DNA of 64,000 bases. Source: Prasinococcaceae sp. CCMP 1430. Taxonomy: Eukaryota > Plantae > Prasinodermophyta. Below are positions 41,979-47,856 of the stretch, in pieces; position 1 is the first letter of the stretch; the number at the start of each line of letters is the position of its first letter. The translations under genes and the position numbers were made by a program. Location: positions 689,105 to 753,104 of the forward strand of contig RQSC01000028.1 of NCBI GenBank assembly GCA_013416795.1, written 5' to 3'. The notes under the pieces are model-generated. The model did no database searches. It saw only the letters and a program-made list of their open reading frames with translations, and was not told the origin of the DNA.

Positions 41979-42956
41979 AACACAAACACGCACACACACA
42001 CATACGCACACACACACACACGCACACACAAACTACGCGGACACACACACAAACACGCACACACACACGCGCGCACACACATGAGCGCGTGCACACACAC
42101 CACGCGCGCACACACACACACACACGCACACACTCACAGTGTGCGTCGCCTGCGCCGCGCCGCGGCGAGGATGCGCGGCGCGGCACCCGCCTGCGCGCGC
42201 GGTAGCGCTCGACGAGCGTGCCGAGCGCGAACGCGCCGNNNNNNNNNNNNNNNNNNNNNNNNNNNNNNNNNNNNNNNNNNNNNNNNNNNNNNNNNNNNNN
42301 NNNNNNNNNNNNNNNNNNNNNNNNNNNNNNNNNNNNNNNNNNNNNNNNNNNNNNNNNNNNNNNNNNNNNNNNNNNNNNNNNNNNNNNNNNNNNNNNNNNN
42401 NNNNNNNNNNNNNNNNNNNNNNNNNNNNNNNNNNNNNNNNNNNNNNNNNNNNNNNNNNNNNNNNNNNNNNNNNNNNNNNNNNNNNNNNNNNNNNNNNNNN
42501 NNNNNNNNNNNNNNNNNNNNNNNNNNNNNNNNNNNNNNNNNNNNNNNNNNNNNNNNNNNNNNNNNNNNNNNNNNNNNNNNNNNNNNNNNNNNNNNNNNNN
42601 NNNNNNNNNNNNNNNNNNNNNNNNNNNNNNNNNNNNNNNNNNNNNNNNNNNNNNNNNNNNNNNNNNNNNNNNNNNNNNNNNNNNNNNNNNNNGCGAGGGC
42701 GCGCGAGGACGCGCGCGCGAGCGAGCGAGCCAGCCAGCCAGCCAGCCAAGCGGCCGGCCAGCGAGCGGGCGAGCGCACAAGCGCGCGTGCACGTGCGCTC
42801 TGACGTGCGCGGAGGCGTAGGCGCAGGTGCGCGCACGCGTGTGCGCGTACGTAGATGCGCGCACGCGCTGACGCCTGCGCCACTCCCCATCCCTGCCCTT
42901 CCATCCTCGCGCCCTCCCCGTCCGCAACTGCGCCGCCGACGCCGCGGCCGACGCAG

Positions 42957-43648
42957 GTGCTCGTGGGGTTGATAAGACGCCTCGGGGGCGGCGGCGGCGC
43001 GACCGGCGAGGAAAAGTGCGCGCGCAGAGCGGCTCGTGCGCGCGGCGCGTGCGCAGCGCCCTTCGCCCTTTGCCCCGCCACGACCACGCTCTGCGCGCGC
43101 GCGCACGCGCGGGCGCAGGCGCTGCGCGCGAGCGAGCGAGCGTGGCAGCGCGTGCGCCGAGCTCCCTCTGCGCCGGCGGGTCGCTCACACTCGCGCGGCT
43201 GCGCGCGCGCAGGGTGGACACCAGCGGGGCGCTGTCCGCCGAGCGGCGCGCGGCGGCCGAGACGGCGATCTTCGGCGCGGACGAGGTCGCCAAGCACAAC
43301 TCGCGCGACGACTGCTGGCTGATTATAGAGGGGAAGGTGTACGACATCACCGAGTGCGTCGCGCACGGCCCAGCCCGACCGCAGACGCGCCCGCGCTGGC
43401 GCGGGGCCGTGCGCGCGCGCCACCGCGCGCCCGCGCGGCGGTGCGCCCAAGCGCTCTCCTGCTCGAGCAACTGACACGTGTGCCCATCCGCCGATGCCAA
43501 TCGCAGCTACGTGGACGAGCATCCCGGCGGCGACGCAATCTTGAACAACGCGGGCGGCGACGCCACGGAGGGCTTCAAGGGGCCGCAGCATCCTACGCGC
43601 GTGTGGGACGAGCTCGAGGAGTACTGGGTGGGCACGCTGGCCAAGTGA
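42957..43648 (+). CDS. CYB5: Cytochrome b5 (5' part in gap); intron 43354-43506
   Basis: EVAKHNSRDDCWLIIEGKVYDITE|YVDEHPGGDAIL..AGGDATEGF..QH. Confidence 0.95.
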
Positions 43649-43763
43649 GGGCGGCGATGTGGCCAAGCTGGCGCGCGATTGAGCGCGGCGTATCGCGCGC
43701 TCCGCTCGTGCGCGTACTAATGTAAGGGCTGGGGCTAGGGTAATACAAGTGCGCTCGTGTACT

Positions 43764-46250
43764 TTACAGTGCCTGCGGCGGCCGCACCGGCGCCCGCTCG
43801 GGTGAGCCCGGCAGCGACGGCGTCGGTGAGTGAGCGCCCACGGCGGTGCGCACGCGCTTCACGGCCGTGGTCGCTGCGGCGCGCACGTCCGCGCGCACGT
43901 CCGCCTGAAGTGCGAAGAGCCCCAGGAGGAGCAGCCCGCGGCCGTCGTTGAAGGCCATCGCGAAGATCAGCGCGAGATAGAGCTTGCTTTCCTGCACGTC
44001 CGTGCCGACGTAGTTGCTCACGTTGAGCGCCATCTGGAGCATGACGTCCAGCATGAGGATCACCAGATACACCTGCGTGCGCATGCGCGTGGGCACGTAC
44101 GCCACCTCGTTTCGCACGTCGTCCGCGCGCTGCGCCCACTCCCACTCCTGCGAGTGACGGTCGGCGACGCCGTCCCTCCCCAGCCCCGCAGGCGTTGGCG
44201 CCGCGCGCCCCCGCGCGTGCGGCAGCGCAGTCGGGCGCGCGTGCAGCCCCGCCACGGCGGACTCAACGTCGTGCAGCGAGGGCGGCACGTACGAGACGGG
44301 GAGCAGCTGCGTGCCCTCAGCTTCCACTTGGTCAGGCCCCACGCCGTAGCGTCCCGCGCCAACGTTTGGCGTCGCCACGCCGGCGTCTGCCCCCGCAGAG
44401 ACGTCGAGCTCGACCAGATCGGCGAAGGACCCGAAAGACGCGCTCGCCCGCCGCTTGTGCTCGCGGCGCATGCGAAACTCGGCGCACACCAGCAGCAGCC
44501 CCACGCACGCAAGGAGCATCGAGTCGTACGCGAGCGTCACCGCCGTCTGCGCGCGCCCGTACGCAACGTAGCAAGGCTCGTGGGCGCTGCTTGCCGCGGC
44601 GCGCGGGTCGTCAGGCGCGTCGGGCACGCCCCACAGCCGCAGCGGTAAGTTGATCGCCAGCGAGACTGTCCACAGCGCGGCGTGCGTGCGCCAGGCGGGG
44701 GAGAGCACCACGCGCGGGTACGCCGAGAGCGCGAGCAGTGCGGGCGCGAGCAGCGCGCTCGAGCAGCGCGCGAGCACGCGCGCGACGTTCTCGACGGCGT
44801 AGATGTCCTCGCGGGCGAGCATGTGCGCCTGGCCGTGGGGCACAATCAAGCACGACATGAAGGACGTGTCGAAGAGGAGCTGGTAGGCCGCGGCGACCAC
44901 CACCGTGGCGTGCACGCCGCGCGTGCGCCAGCGCGGCGAGAGCGACGCCGCGGTGAGCAGGTACGCGCACGCTGCGGCGCTGAGGGCGTGGCACCACACG
45001 CGGAACGCGCCCACGGCCTCCCCGAGCGACTCAAGCGACGCGTCCGTGAGCATGAGCGACTGCACGAGCATGAGCGGCGCCGAGGCCACCAGGCAGAGCA
45101 CCACGTACAGCGCGATCGTCGTGGGGTGCACCGCGTACTGCCGCGCGTACACGAAGACCGACGGCGCCACGGGGATGCAGCCGTACACCAGCGCAAACAT
45201 CTTGCAGTTGGCGCTCAGGCCGGGCATGAAGGCGGCCACCTCCCGCGAGACCACCGGCAGCACCACCAGCTTGAGCACGGCCAGCCACAGCGGCAGCAGC
45301 ATGGCGGACATCTTGCTGCCCGCTTGGCCGACCTTCCCATACATCGAGGCGCCCAGCAGGAACAGCGAGGTGGGCGCGAAGCTCGCGGCCACCATGGTGC
45401 ACAGCGAGTCGAAGAACGGCGGCAGCGTCCTGCCCAGGGCGGCGTTGTAGAGCACGCCGAGCAGCGCGCCCAGCACGAGCGGGTTCACCAGCGTGCGCCC
45501 GAGCAGCGGCAGGAGCAGCGACCGCCGCCGCCGCCGCCGCGGGCGACGTTCGCTGGGCAACTGCCCGCCCAGCAGCAGCTGCGCCTCCTCGTTTCCTCCC
45601 CCCAGCCCCTCCTCCTCGCGCTCCTCCCGCGCGGCGTCCGCCTTGGCCTGCCCCAGCTCCATGAGCGCGTAGCCCAGCGGGTTGAGCAGCAACATCTGCG
45701 GTATCGCAATGAGGTAGAGGTAGACCTCGTAGCCGCCGCCGGGCAGGAGCGACGCGACGAGCGGCAGGCCGATGGGCAGGTCGTTGGACTGCGTGGCCGC
45801 TATTCCCCACATGCCCGCCTTCTTCAGGCGCTCGGCGCGGGCGAGCGCCTCGCCGAGCGCGGCGCCCTCGGGCGACGCCGCCGCGGCGGCGTCGACGTCG
45901 GCGCTCGAGCCGAAGAGCGCCGCGGAGAGCGCCGCGAGCGCGAAGACGAGCGCCTTGCCCAGCGTGAGCGTGCTCAGCAGCTCCCAGCCGATGCCGTGCA
46001 GGTCCACCTGCGTCGCGAGCGCCAGGAAGAGCGTCACCGGGAGCGCGAACGACGCCACGTACGCGCCCAGGCCGCGCTCGAGCGTCTCGGCGCCGGGCGC
46101 GCCCCGCCAGCGCACGAAGTAGCCCAGCGCGACGACGAGCAGCACGTTGCCCAGCGCGCGCACCAGCCCCACGTACGACGCGTGCGCCGCCGCGCCCGCC
46201 GCCAGGTCCGCCGCGGACGCGTGCGCCATCAGCATCACCGGCGCGTCCAT
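43764..46250 (-). CDS. GPR155: GPR155/LYCHOS-like protein: PIN/AEC transporter domain followed by a GPCR-like multi-TM domain; no DEP domain
   Basis: ATQSNDLPIGLPLV, YLYLIAIPQMLLLNPLGYALMEL, NPLVLGALLGVLYN, LCLVASAPLM, KLYLAL.F.MAFNDGRGLLLLGLFAL. Confidence 0.85.
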   Translation of the reverse strand: MDAPVMLMAHASAADLAAGAAAHASYVGLVRALGNVLLVVALGYFVRWRGAPGAETLERGLGAYVASFALPVTLFLALATQVDLHGIGWELLSTLTLGKALVFALAALSAALFGSSADVDAAAAASPEGAALGEALARAERLKKAGMWGIAATQSNDLPIGLPLVASLLPGGGYEVYLYLIAIPQMLLLNPLGYALMELGQAKADAAREEREEEGLGGGNEEAQLLLGGQLPSERRPRRRRRRSLLLPLLGRTLVNPLVLGALLGVLYNAALGRTLPPFFDSLCTMVAASFAPTSLFLLGASMYGKVGQAGSKMSAMLLPLWLAVLKLVVLPVVSREVAAFMPGLSANCKMFALVYGCIPVAPSVFVYARQYAVHPTTIALYVVLCLVASAPLMLVQSLMLTDASLESLGEAVGAFRVWCHALSAAACAYLLTAASLSPRWRTRGVHATVVVAAAYQLLFDTSFMSCLIVPHGQAHMLAREDIYAVENVARVLARCSSALLAPALLALSAYPRVVLSPAWRTHAALWTVSLAINLPLRLWGVPDAPDDPRAAASSAHEPCYVAYGRAQTAVTLAYDSMLLACVGLLLVCAEFRMRREHKRRASASFGSFADLVELDVSAGADAGVATPNVGAGRYGVGPDQVEAEGTQLLPVSYVPPSLHDVESAVAGLHARPTALPHARGRAAPTPAGLGRDGVADRHSQEWEWAQRADDVRNEVAYVPTRMRTQVYLVILMLDVMLQMALNVSNYVGTDVQESKLYLALIFAMAFNDGRGLLLLGLFALQADVRADVRAAATTAVKRVRTAVGAHSPTPSLPGSPERAPVRPPQAL

Positions 46251-46317
46251 CCCTCAAACACACCAAGCAGGCCGAGGGTGTGTGTGTGTGTGTGTGTGCG
46301 TGTGTGTGTGTGTGTGC

Positions 46318-46378
<61 letters not shown>

Positions 46379-46713
46379 GCCCCCGCCGCTGACGCCGCGC
46401 GCGCGCGCGCGCGCGCCACGCGCCGCTTCGCGGATAGCACCATCAAAACGCATTGCAAAAAGGCGCAAACCTCAACCTTACACCTTTTTTGTCATATCAC
46501 ATCACATGCAAATTACGGACAGTAGACCCTGTCTATTTACCCCAATTACACACGTCAGCTGGTCGTGAGTTTTTTATCCGTGAGGCGCGTGGCGGCGACA
46601 CGTCAGCGATGGGCGCGCGTGCGCCTGCGTGTGTGTGTGTGTGTGGCGTGTGTGTGTGTGTGTGTGTGTGTGCGTGTGTGGCGTGTGTGTGTGTGTGTGG
46701 CGTGTGTGTGTGC

Positions 46714-46771
<58 letters not shown>

Positions 46772-46792
46772 CCCGCGCGCGCCGCCGCGCGG

Positions 46793-47856
46793 ATGGGCGC
46801 CTTCCACGAGCTCTCCGACACCACCGCCGCGGGCGAGGCGCTCGACTTCGCCAGCCTCAAGGGGCGCGCGGTGCTCGTCACCAACGTCGCGTCGCGCTGA
46901 GGCGCGACGGCGCGGAACTACTCGCAGTTTGCGCAGCTCGAGGAGAAGTGCGTGCGCGCGCGCGTGCTCGTGTGTGTGTGTGTGTGTGTGTGTGGAGGAG
47001 AAGGAGGCGGGGAAGGATGCAGGCGCACGCATGCACGCGCGTGTGCTGACCTCTTTCCCGACCTTCACACTCGTTGCACACACACAAAAACACACACACA
47101 CACGCGCGCGCGCACACTCACACACACACGCACACACGCACGCACAAACACACGCGCACGCGCAGCGCGTGTGCGTGTGCGTGTGCGTGTGCGTGTGCGT
47201 GTGCGTGTGCGTGTGCGTGTGTGCCCGCAGGTTCGGCGACAAGCTTGCCATCCTGGCGTACCCTTGCGACCAGTTCGGCGGGCAGGAGCTCGCGTCCGAC
47301 GCCGACGTGCAGGCGTTCGCCGCGGGCAAGGGCCTCACCGGCAAGAGCTTCACGCTCATGAAGCGCGCCGACGTCAACGGCGGCGGCGCGTCGCCCGTGT
47401 GGAGCATGCTCAAGGGGGCGTGCGACACCTGCGACGGGGACGTGGTGCGTGTGGGCGCGCGGGCGTGTGTGTGTGTGTAGTCACTGGACCCTCCGTGTGT
47501 GTGTGTGTGTACTTGCATGTGTGTAGGAGGCGTGTGTGTGTGCGTGCGTGTGCGTGCGTGTGGACGCCCTGAGTGCCGTGTGTGTGTGTGCTCGTGGGGT
47601 GCACGCGCGCATGCGTGTGTGTGTGTGTGTGTGTGCATGCACGCGCGTGCGTGTGTGTGTGCGCTCGTGTGCATGCGAGCGTGCGCGCGTGCGCGCGCGT
47701 GTGCGAAGCGGGCGCTCACGCACGCACCCGCGCCCGCGCGCGCCCGCGCAGCGCTGGAACTTCGCCGCCAAGTTCTACGTCGACAAGGAGGGCAACGTCG
47801 TGGAGCGCTCCGGCGACAACGACGCGGCGCTCATCGAAAAGCTCGTGTCGGCCTAG
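46793..47856 (+). CDS. GPX: Selenocysteine glutathione peroxidase; exons 46793-46947, 47231-47444, 47752-47856; UGA(Sec) at 46898-46900
   Basis: [17 protein letters not shown]; [11 protein letters not shown]; [19 protein letters not shown]. Confidence 0.93.

Follow-up and report, generated by a model that had tools for sequence, protein, structure and literature searches.

The window analyzed here is a stretch of 64,000 nucleotides from the green-lineage alga Prasinococcaceae sp. CCMP 1430 (assembly GCA_013416795.1, contig RQSC01000028.1, positions 689,105 to 753,104 of the forward strand). At positions 43764-46250, on the minus strand, it carries a real and expressed gene for a membrane protein of the LYCHOS/GPR155 kind outside Holozoa, in which a PIN-like transporter is joined to a seven-transmembrane (7TM) domain with the predicted fold of a G protein-coupled receptor (GPCR) and from which the DEP domain is missing. 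The gene and its parts are given below by window position and by residue of the 828-amino acid (aa) product, with TM denoting a transmembrane helix.

43764..46250, minus strand: DEP-less LYCHOS/GPR155-type 17-helix gene, complete and intronless, 828 aa, ATG start, TAA stop
45048..46175, minus strand: PIN-like/AEC transporter domain, residues 26-401 (TM1-TM10), from Pfam Mem_trans, the LYCHOS match and VIA-align
46104..46133, minus strand: candidate CRAC-type sterol motif of TM1, V40-x3-Y44-x4-R49, equivalent to LYCHOS Val53/Tyr57/Arg61 in the HMMER alignment
45780..45794, minus strand: first crossover motif TQSND, residues 153-157, near-invariant in a 23-sequence alignment
45159..45176, minus strand: second crossover motif IPVAPS, residues 359-364, with Pro360/Pro363 corresponding to LYCHOS Pro324/Pro327
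43836..45035, minus strand: predicted GPCR-fold 7TM domain, residues 406-805 (TM11-TM17 and a helix-8-like C-terminal helix), from hhalign, VIA-align and Foldseek
44106..44453, minus strand: long, probably cytosolic TM15-TM16 loop, residues 600-715, beginning with basic RRASAS, at the site of the third intracellular loop (ICL3)/LED of LYCHOS
43908..43955, minus strand: TM17 family motif, residues 766-781 (N768-x-G770-x-G772 ... F779), aligning with LYCHOS N700-F-G-Q-G ... F711
43767..43835, minus strand: C-terminal tail, short and rich in Pro/Ala, residues 806-828, in the place of the DEP domain of animal GPR155

The GC content of the window is about 56-75 %, consistent with the 69.8 % published for Prasinoderma coloniale (PMC7455551), to which the marine sources of the sequence also correspond. 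In this DNA of 66-72 % GC, chance open reading frames (ORFs) of 300-700 codons are present in every frame; the length of the 828-codon ORF alone therefore proves nothing. This ORF matched Pfam Mem_trans (5e-18, residues 143-395) and the NCBIfam family 2a69 'auxin efflux carrier', and no Pfam match was found for the ORFs of other frames that overlap 43764-46250. Twenty public runs (DNA, RNA and metatranscriptome) carried the stretch wholly or in part. In DNA runs from at least 13 separate studies of one organism, 0.97 of the sampled words of the stretch were present, and the stretch was also contained in two marine metatranscriptomes and in two transcriptome-like runs from that organism. RNA contigs aligned to 42700-47000 spanned 43741-45954 and 45950-46266 with no splice joint, and the same runs displayed GT..AG joints at 43015>43213 and 43353>43507 in a convergent plus-strand gene. 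The splice joints of this neighbor identify the runs as RNA, so that the 828-aa gene is transcribed and intronless; the first-pass annotation of this DNA had already read it as an intronless ORF of this length, and both the ORF and the gap-free RNA contigs agree. Contigs 95-99 % alike in the marine metatranscriptomes revealed expression at sea, and a cluster of 21 members at 90 % identity united sequences from TARA and other metagenomes with one MMETSP transcript. Comparison of the window copy with a TARA environmental variant identified 12 synonymous and 6 non-synonymous codon differences (ratio of non-synonymous to synonymous polymorphism, pN/pS, ~0.19). Taken together, these data establish the 828-aa ORF as a real, expressed, intronless gene under purifying selection.

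The N-terminal half of the protein is a GPR155-type PIN-like transporter. A HMMER search of all PDB sequences revealed human LYCHOS/GPR155 chains as the best matches (E 3e-30 to 3e-28, residues 34-407), whereas the plant PINs scored from 3e-7 (PIN8) to 2e-3, with PIN3 and PIN1 at about 1e-3. Structural comparison by VIA-align gave a Z of 38.0 for the LYCHOS transporter-only chain 9jbh_A (rmsd, the root-mean-square deviation, 2.4 A over 327 residues), against 27-29 for the PINs; this half is thus nearer to GPR155 than to PIN by both E-value (3e-30 versus 3e-7) and Z (38 versus 27-29). The nearest clusters by language-model features (ESM Atlas) were chordate GPR155 (0.95-0.98). The plant PINs (PIN8 7qp9, PIN1 7y9t and PIN3 7wks, aligned over residues 21-403) resemble this half in transporter fold and in the arrangement of crossover Asn and Pro. 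Unlike the algal protein they have no 7TM domain, and canonical PINs carry a long central hydrophilic loop, where the alga has ~45 residues (200-245) and seven further helices after the transporter. When residue roles described for LYCHOS (PMC11525196) were transferred through the HMMER alignment to LYCHOS, the transport crossover residues Asn145, Pro324 and Pro327 were all kept as Asn156, Pro360 and Pro363; Asn145 is the ligand-contacting asparagine. The CRAC triad Val40/Tyr44/Arg49 is likewise kept, and its presence marks a candidate sterol motif. LYCHOS Trp678, replaced by Arg in the F352A/W678R constructs, is Gly749 in the alga.

Residues 406-805 are laid out as five helices, a disordered loop of ~115 residues and two helices. 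Their homology to the 7TM domain of GPR155 rests on profile and fold evidence. By hhalign, an alignment of the algal C-terminal half with the unmodified homolog from a second alga (P0019, described below) matched a profile of 10 DEP-type GPR155 C-terminal halves with a probability of 90.6 % (P 1.3e-6, 175 columns). A variant alignment, in which the read-through intron residues of P0019 were removed and the flanks joined, matched end to end (86.6 %, P 4.4e-6, 327 columns); the claim rests on the run with the unmodified sequence. Controls were clean: matching the C-terminal half to the transporter half gave 0.2 % (P 0.34, 41 columns), the reversed query gave 0.3 % (P 0.17, 1 column), and the maximum among 20 column shuffles was 1.8 % (minimum P 0.027). 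Merging the C-terminal halves of seven DEP-less sequences raised the match to the DEP-type 7TM profile to 97.9 % (P 5e-13, 334 columns). The signature positions in common are an Arg in TM13, the Pro ending TM14, Y-G-x-x-Q before TM15 and N-x-G-x-G ... F in TM17. BLASTP against insect GPR155 gave weak collinear matches over TM14-15 (E 0.016) and TM16-17 (E 0.06). Three word-index protein searches, swamped by Ala/Leu/Arg low complexity, returned the protein's own cluster and three insect GPR155 sequences only; a feature search of the ESM Atlas with the C-terminal half gave no usable match, a metagenome scan with patterns from this half confirmed nothing, and none of the Pfam 7tm families, including 7tm_2, matched the 828-aa protein at E<=1.

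To examine the fold, a full-length AlphaFold2 model was built from a 23-sequence alignment (mean predicted local distance difference test, pLDDT, 67.3; predicted template-modeling score, pTM, 0.63). The model and its superposition on LYCHOS gave a count of 17 helices. Human LYCHOS/GPR155 structures for comparison included PDB 8u54, 8u5c, 8wr3, 9jbe and others (Shin 2022; Bayly-Jones 2024, PMC11525196). In a Foldseek search of the PDB with the full model, the best 27 matches were all LYCHOS (E 9e-17 to 3e-12, mostly ~770-800 aligned columns), with target-normalized TM-scores of up to 0.75 for full-length chains; the PINs followed at ~1e-7 over roughly 380-420 columns. VIA-align superposed the full model on 8u5c_E with Z 39.3 and rmsd 5.3 A (564/575 residues, model 21-785 on chain 34-717), and the relative packing of the two domains in the model agreed with LYCHOS. 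Predicted structures of animal GPR155 in the ESM Atlas matched with a TM-score of 0.70 over 658-660 residues. Because the transporter by itself already scores Z 38, residues 405-828 were folded separately (pLDDT 63, pTM 0.58). Among 48,161 solved chains, VIA-align placed residues 371-718 of LYCHOS first for this model (Z 20.8, rmsd 2.9 A, 239 residues, 16-17 % identity) and Frizzled4 second (Z 20.2, rmsd 4.5 A); the top 50 rows were all GPCRs, down to Z 16.5, and among the GPCR matches rmsd was lowest and identity highest for LYCHOS. Adhesion (class B2, Z about 17-18), Frizzled and class A GPCRs thus share the seven-helix fold (Z 16.5-20.2), but their identity is 7-15 % and their rmsd is above that of LYCHOS, and the alga has neither an extracellular ligand-binding domain nor a GAIN domain. 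The 7TM domain of LYCHOS itself has been called closest to class B2 (Bayly-Jones et al., PMC11525196). As modeled, the C-terminal half is a GPCR-type bundle with LYCHOS as its nearest solved example, by a small margin in Z and a clear one in rmsd and identity.

The TM15-TM16 loop lies where human LYCHOS has ICL3/LED (residues 551-641, between helices 15 and 16), the proposed GATOR1 binder (Bayly-Jones 2024, PMC11525196). Residues 608-694 had a pLDDT <50, which predicts disorder, and comparison with the 39 %-identical P0019 identified only short conserved islands. TM17 is followed by an amphipathic helix (783-805) and a Pro/Ala tail of 23 residues. Basic residues after TM11, TM15 and TM17 suggest that the loop and the tail are cytosolic, as in LYCHOS. 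The DEP domain is absent from the algal protein. Pfam DEP gave no match at E<=1 in the 828 aa, and a local hidden Markov model (HMM) built from ten GPR155 DEP domains, which scored positives at 1e-33 to 1e-39, detected no DEP in the DEP-less relatives or in the six frames of the 64-kb window, where the best E was 2.5. The RNA ends by the stop codon and a cytochrome-b5 gene stands directly after it, so that a downstream DEP exon is not possible.

Much of what had been claimed for this locus from the letters alone was borne out by these analyses. The motifs TQSND (153-157), LLNPLG (188-193) and AFNDGRGLLLLGLFAL (766-781) are present as described; the N-terminal half is GPR155-type (Mem_trans 5e-18, LYCHOS E 3e-30, Z 38.0); the C-terminal half aligns and, as modeled, folds like the GPCR-like domain of GPR155 (hhalign 90.6 %, LYCHOS the best of 48,161 chains); about 17 helices had been expected and 17 were counted; and the lack of DEP was upheld by Pfam, the RNA end and the six-frame HMM search. 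For the putative role as a sterol or nutrient sensor, the implied part of DEP in signaling calls for caution: in LYCHOS the proposed GATOR1 binder is the ICL3/LED loop (PMC11525196).

A metagenome scan with the transporter motifs was used to look for relatives, and 47 loci were fetched. These loci contained 8 distinct full-length sequences with Mem_trans and DEP, and several long ORFs with Mem_trans and without DEP. DEP-type and DEP-less forms had a common hydropathy layout: ten helices, then five more, a loop and a final pair. The closest relative, P0019 from the second alga (metagenome contig L002), is 39 % identical in the C-terminal half and has the same fusion and short tail, two introns and no DEP. 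A Mem_trans gene call precedes it, and the DNA shows one gene split by the gene caller. One intron, read to its AG acceptor but without an exact donor position, interrupts the TM9 region, and TM17 is split by a second intron, GTGAGT..CAG; the two fall at L002:640-830 and L002:1901-2060, and the TM17 intron lies just ahead of the N/T-D-x-R-G motif and was read through by the gene caller. At L020:1141-3456, on a metagenome contig, we identified an uninterrupted ORF of 772 aa from the first ATG (72 % GC), DEP-less and with 17 helices, which shares a 90 % cluster with Aureococcus anophagefferens XP_009033702.1. That database entry (P0023, 958 aa) is chimeric, combining a piece of Mem_trans with a haem-binding ChaN domain; the Aureococcus reference gene model looks mis-joined, which may explain why the 17-helix architecture was overlooked in this pelagophyte. 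Further DEP-less 17-helix forms were found at L030/L034, L017/L021 and L018/L023. Apart from P0019, the DEP-less relatives are ~21-28 % identical to the algal protein, with loops of ~30 to ~220 residues. Those at L017:3282-5390 and L021:141-2192 lie on compact contigs of 42-49 % GC and have a TM15-TM16 loop of only ~30 residues; not every member of the family therefore has a long ICL3. A bacterial origin of L017 was considered and rejected, as its tetraspanin and ARM-repeat neighbors mark it as eukaryotic. One further ORF, L015:2048-4462 (805 aa, 31 % GC), had a weak DEP match of 2.7e-5, below the Pfam cut-off; this DEP may be degenerating or very divergent.

The DEP-type GPR155 proteins (insects P0002-P0004; marine eukaryotes L005-L016) resemble the algal protein in layout and junction, with 22-28 % full-length identity, and a phmmer alignment of the whole algal protein to one of them (L010) spans TM1 to TM17; they differ in that all have a C-terminal DEP domain. 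In the tree they formed a compact cluster on short branches, with the algal protein far outside, while the DEP-less forms stood on long branches (algal end branch 2.55 versus a median of 0.43). The algal protein joined the high-GC DEP-less forms weakly (support 71/25), with long-branch and composition warnings. The tree places neither the alga nor a donor, and we draw no inference from it on vertical descent versus transfer.

These relatives bear on where the fusion is thought to occur. Garcia De Las Bayonas and King (eLife 2025, PMC12716839), surveying 993 eukaryote species, reported GPR155 as absent outside Holozoa and as having arisen in stem holozoans; their EukProt search used BLAST with a cut-off of 1e-5 and 70 % coverage, and a 7TM domain as divergent as that of the alga would escape it. 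Vosolsobe et al. (10.1101/2024.06.26.600818) found eukaryotic PINs and GPR155 monophyletic and PIN homologs in a few green algae, placed the receptor-domain fusion in the ancestor of Metazoa, and favored lateral transfer as the explanation of scattered PIN/GPR155 homologs. Dabravolski and Isayenkov (PMC9330825) described proteins combining the transporter with DEP in some alveolates, and noted within the animal clade one sequence from a ciliate and one from a cryptophyte. In our literature search no link was found between GPR155/LYCHOS and a 17-helix protein in green algae or pelagophytes. Since DEP-less 17-helix relatives occur in other algae and protists, the fusion is not limited to Holozoa and is therefore wider than reported in PMC12716839.

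Set beside LYCHOS as a whole, the algal protein has the same 17 helices, with a ten-helix PIN-like transporter followed by a predicted GPCR-fold 7TM in the same order and with the same junction, the same crossover Asn and Pro, the TM1 CRAC triad, a long TM15-TM16 loop predicted to be disordered and N-x-G-x-G in TM17. It differs in lacking DEP and the Phe/Phe gate described below, in the change of Glu48, Cys55, Pro44 and Trp678, in a 23-residue insertion between TM3 and TM4, in a loop sequence unrelated to the human LED, and in a 7TM domain whose divergence hides the kinship from all but profile and fold methods.

This expressed and constrained protein is a 17-helix member of the LYCHOS/GPR155 family, in which the transporter is fused directly to the 7TM domain and a short tail stands in the place of DEP, and it probably acts as a transceptor. 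Such a transceptor would reside in the plasma membrane or in an endomembrane of a vacuolar or lysosome-like kind. Binding of a small organic anion (auxin-like, or some other carboxylate) at the Asn156/Pro360 crossover could drive elevator movements, which would pass through the TM1/TM10/TM17 interface to the 7TM domain and on to the cytosolic loop and tail; the loop and tail might in turn recruit a partner protein. A sterol may sit in the pocket at this interface, because the CRAC residues Val40, Tyr44 and Arg49 of TM1 are kept. The aromatic gate of LYCHOS, Phe352 (TM10) and Phe705 (TM17), is replaced by Val388 and Leu773, so that sterol access would not be gated as in LYCHOS. DEP appears dispensable for the basic design because DEP-less 17-helix relatives occur in at least four other protist lineages.

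Several observations weigh against this interpretation. With the gate missing, two further sterol-related positions are also changed: Glu48 and Cys55, which in LYCHOS are photolabeled by cholesterol analogs, correspond to Asn35 and Leu42. Between the loop of ~115 residues and the human LED or other animal loops, no similarity in sequence was detected. Rag GTPases and GATOR1/2 have been reported missing from Chlorophyta and Streptophyta in a survey that left Prasinoderma outside (PMC9664231), and the known output pathway of LYCHOS may be absent in this organism. Single-sequence evidence for the C-terminal half is negative: phmmer with residues 405-828 found no LYCHOS chain in the PDB (best matches chance-level Sec61 and PAR2), nor did a profile of the C-terminal halves of two algal lineages. 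Exhaustive phmmer of this half against 1.84 billion representative proteins returned its own cluster and P0019 only, with no animal GPR155; divergent relatives such as that of Aureococcus are invisible to a single-sequence search, so absence from other green algae is not to be deduced from this result. Together with the literature searched, which places GPR155 in Holozoa alone, this search gave no sign that such homologs are already routine in green algae, a circumstance that would have counted against the first claim for the locus. On the structural side, model confidence is moderate (pLDDT 67 and 63), the shallow alignments behind the models included GPR155 sequences and may bias the fold toward the family, LYCHOS leads Frizzled4 by 0.6 Z, and Foldseek with the C-terminal model, while returning only GPCRs or LYCHOS in its top 50, gave weak E-values of ~2e-3.

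Some of these points would suit a plain solute carrier, in which an organic anion is carried by the PIN-like domain and the 7TM domain serves structure or regulation only (stability, dimer geometry, trafficking), without a receptor-like signaling output. The crossover residues are fully conserved, DEP is lacking, the loop is poorly conserved even against the closest relative and nearly gone between TM15 and TM16 in L017 and L021, and the canonical downstream partners of LYCHOS are reported absent from green algae (PMC9664231). We nevertheless regard this as unlikely, given that the TM13 Arg, the TM14 Pro, YG..Q and the TM17 N-x-G-x-G are kept across very distant lineages, which argues for a constrained 7TM function, that the CRAC motif is retained at the domain interface, and that no transport activity could be demonstrated for human LYCHOS (PMC11525196). 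A more radical alternative is convergence, with an AEC transporter joined independently to an unrelated seven-helix protein and a likeness to LYCHOS in architecture only. The lack of a significant single-sequence or two-sequence-profile match of the C-terminal half to LYCHOS, and the nearly equal fold scores of other GPCR classes (Z 16.5-20.2), would fit it, but domain order, junction and long-loop site are the same, the signature residues are collinear, the profile-profile match (P 1.3e-6) has clean controls, LYCHOS combines the lowest rmsd with the highest identity, and the domain packing matches; we judge convergence very improbable. That the gene is dead, mis-assembled or carried on a contaminant contig, as N-gaps nearby (42239-42692) and the lack of a record of the exact 828-aa product in the gene collection could have hinted, is effectively refuted by DNA runs of at least 13 studies with 97 % of the sampled words present, by independent ocean metagenomes and the MMETSP transcript, by spliced flanking genes of the same composition, and by an intact frame under purifying selection.

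How the alga came by the fusion is a separate matter. Horizontal transfer from a holozoan or another protist into the alga and/or other protists, followed by loss of DEP, is a possibility we hold tentatively, on the less likely side. It would account for the patchy distribution (the alga and one relative, a pelagophyte and two other lineages) and for an intronless gene between two spliced neighbors, and lateral transfer has been favored for scattered homologs (10.1101/2024.06.26.600818). The very long branch outside the DEP-type cluster (2.55 versus a median of 0.43) means that any transfer was not recent; moreover, the GC of the gene matches that of its surroundings, the P0019 copy has GT-AG introns, and the weak support and the warnings leave the tree without a nameable donor. 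The opposite view is that the fusion of PIN-like transporter and 7TM domain is ancestral for the whole eukaryotic PIN/GPR155 clade and pre-dates the split of Viridiplantae, stramenopiles and Holozoa, with DEP added later toward animals, the receptor half lost from plant PINs, and the alga keeping the pre-PIN state; this we regard as doubtful, and distinctly improbable as it stands.

At present LYCHOS is described as an invention of animals, or at most of holozoans, in which a 'plant-like' transporter was coupled to a GPCR. Its two-part membrane core is now found also in a green-lineage alga, a pelagophyte and other marine protists, always without DEP, so either the origin of the fusion moves deeper or transfers between kingdoms are required. 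The ancient core of transporter, 7TM domain and loop becomes separable from the later addition of DEP, and the question bears on the origin of the plant PIN auxin carriers. For the putative transceptor, the DEP-less and gate-less proteins are natural variants in which the coupling of transport, sterol binding and signaling can be tested, and as the Rag/GATOR route may not exist in these organisms, a different output would have to be sought.

The genes on either side of the LYCHOS-like gene are the following.

42956..43759, plus strand: convergent spliced cytochrome-b5 gene, Pfam Cyt-b5, with GT..AG joints and an RNA contig end at 43759
46793-47414, plus strand: glutathione peroxidase (GPX) gene, divergent upstream neighbor, GSHPx profile

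The cytochrome-b5 gene was also found beside the LYCHOS-like gene on a TARA scaffold. Its RNA contig stops at 43759, five bases from the LYCHOS-like stop codon, and the 3' ends of the RNA contigs of the two genes overlap by ~19 bases (43741-43759); the convergent transcripts may share or overlap their 3' untranslated regions (UTRs). On the other side, a long (CA)n/(CG)n microsatellite (46267-46427) lies 17 bases 5' of the LYCHOS-like start codon, within what is presumed to be the 5' UTR or a promoter common to the LYCHOS-like and divergent GPX genes. The first exon of the latter reads ...LVTNVASR, an in-frame TGA (46898-46900) and GATARNY..., with RNA contigs over 46787-46945. As the TGA coincides exactly with the catalytic position in the GSHPx profile, this neighbor is probably a selenocysteine GPX.

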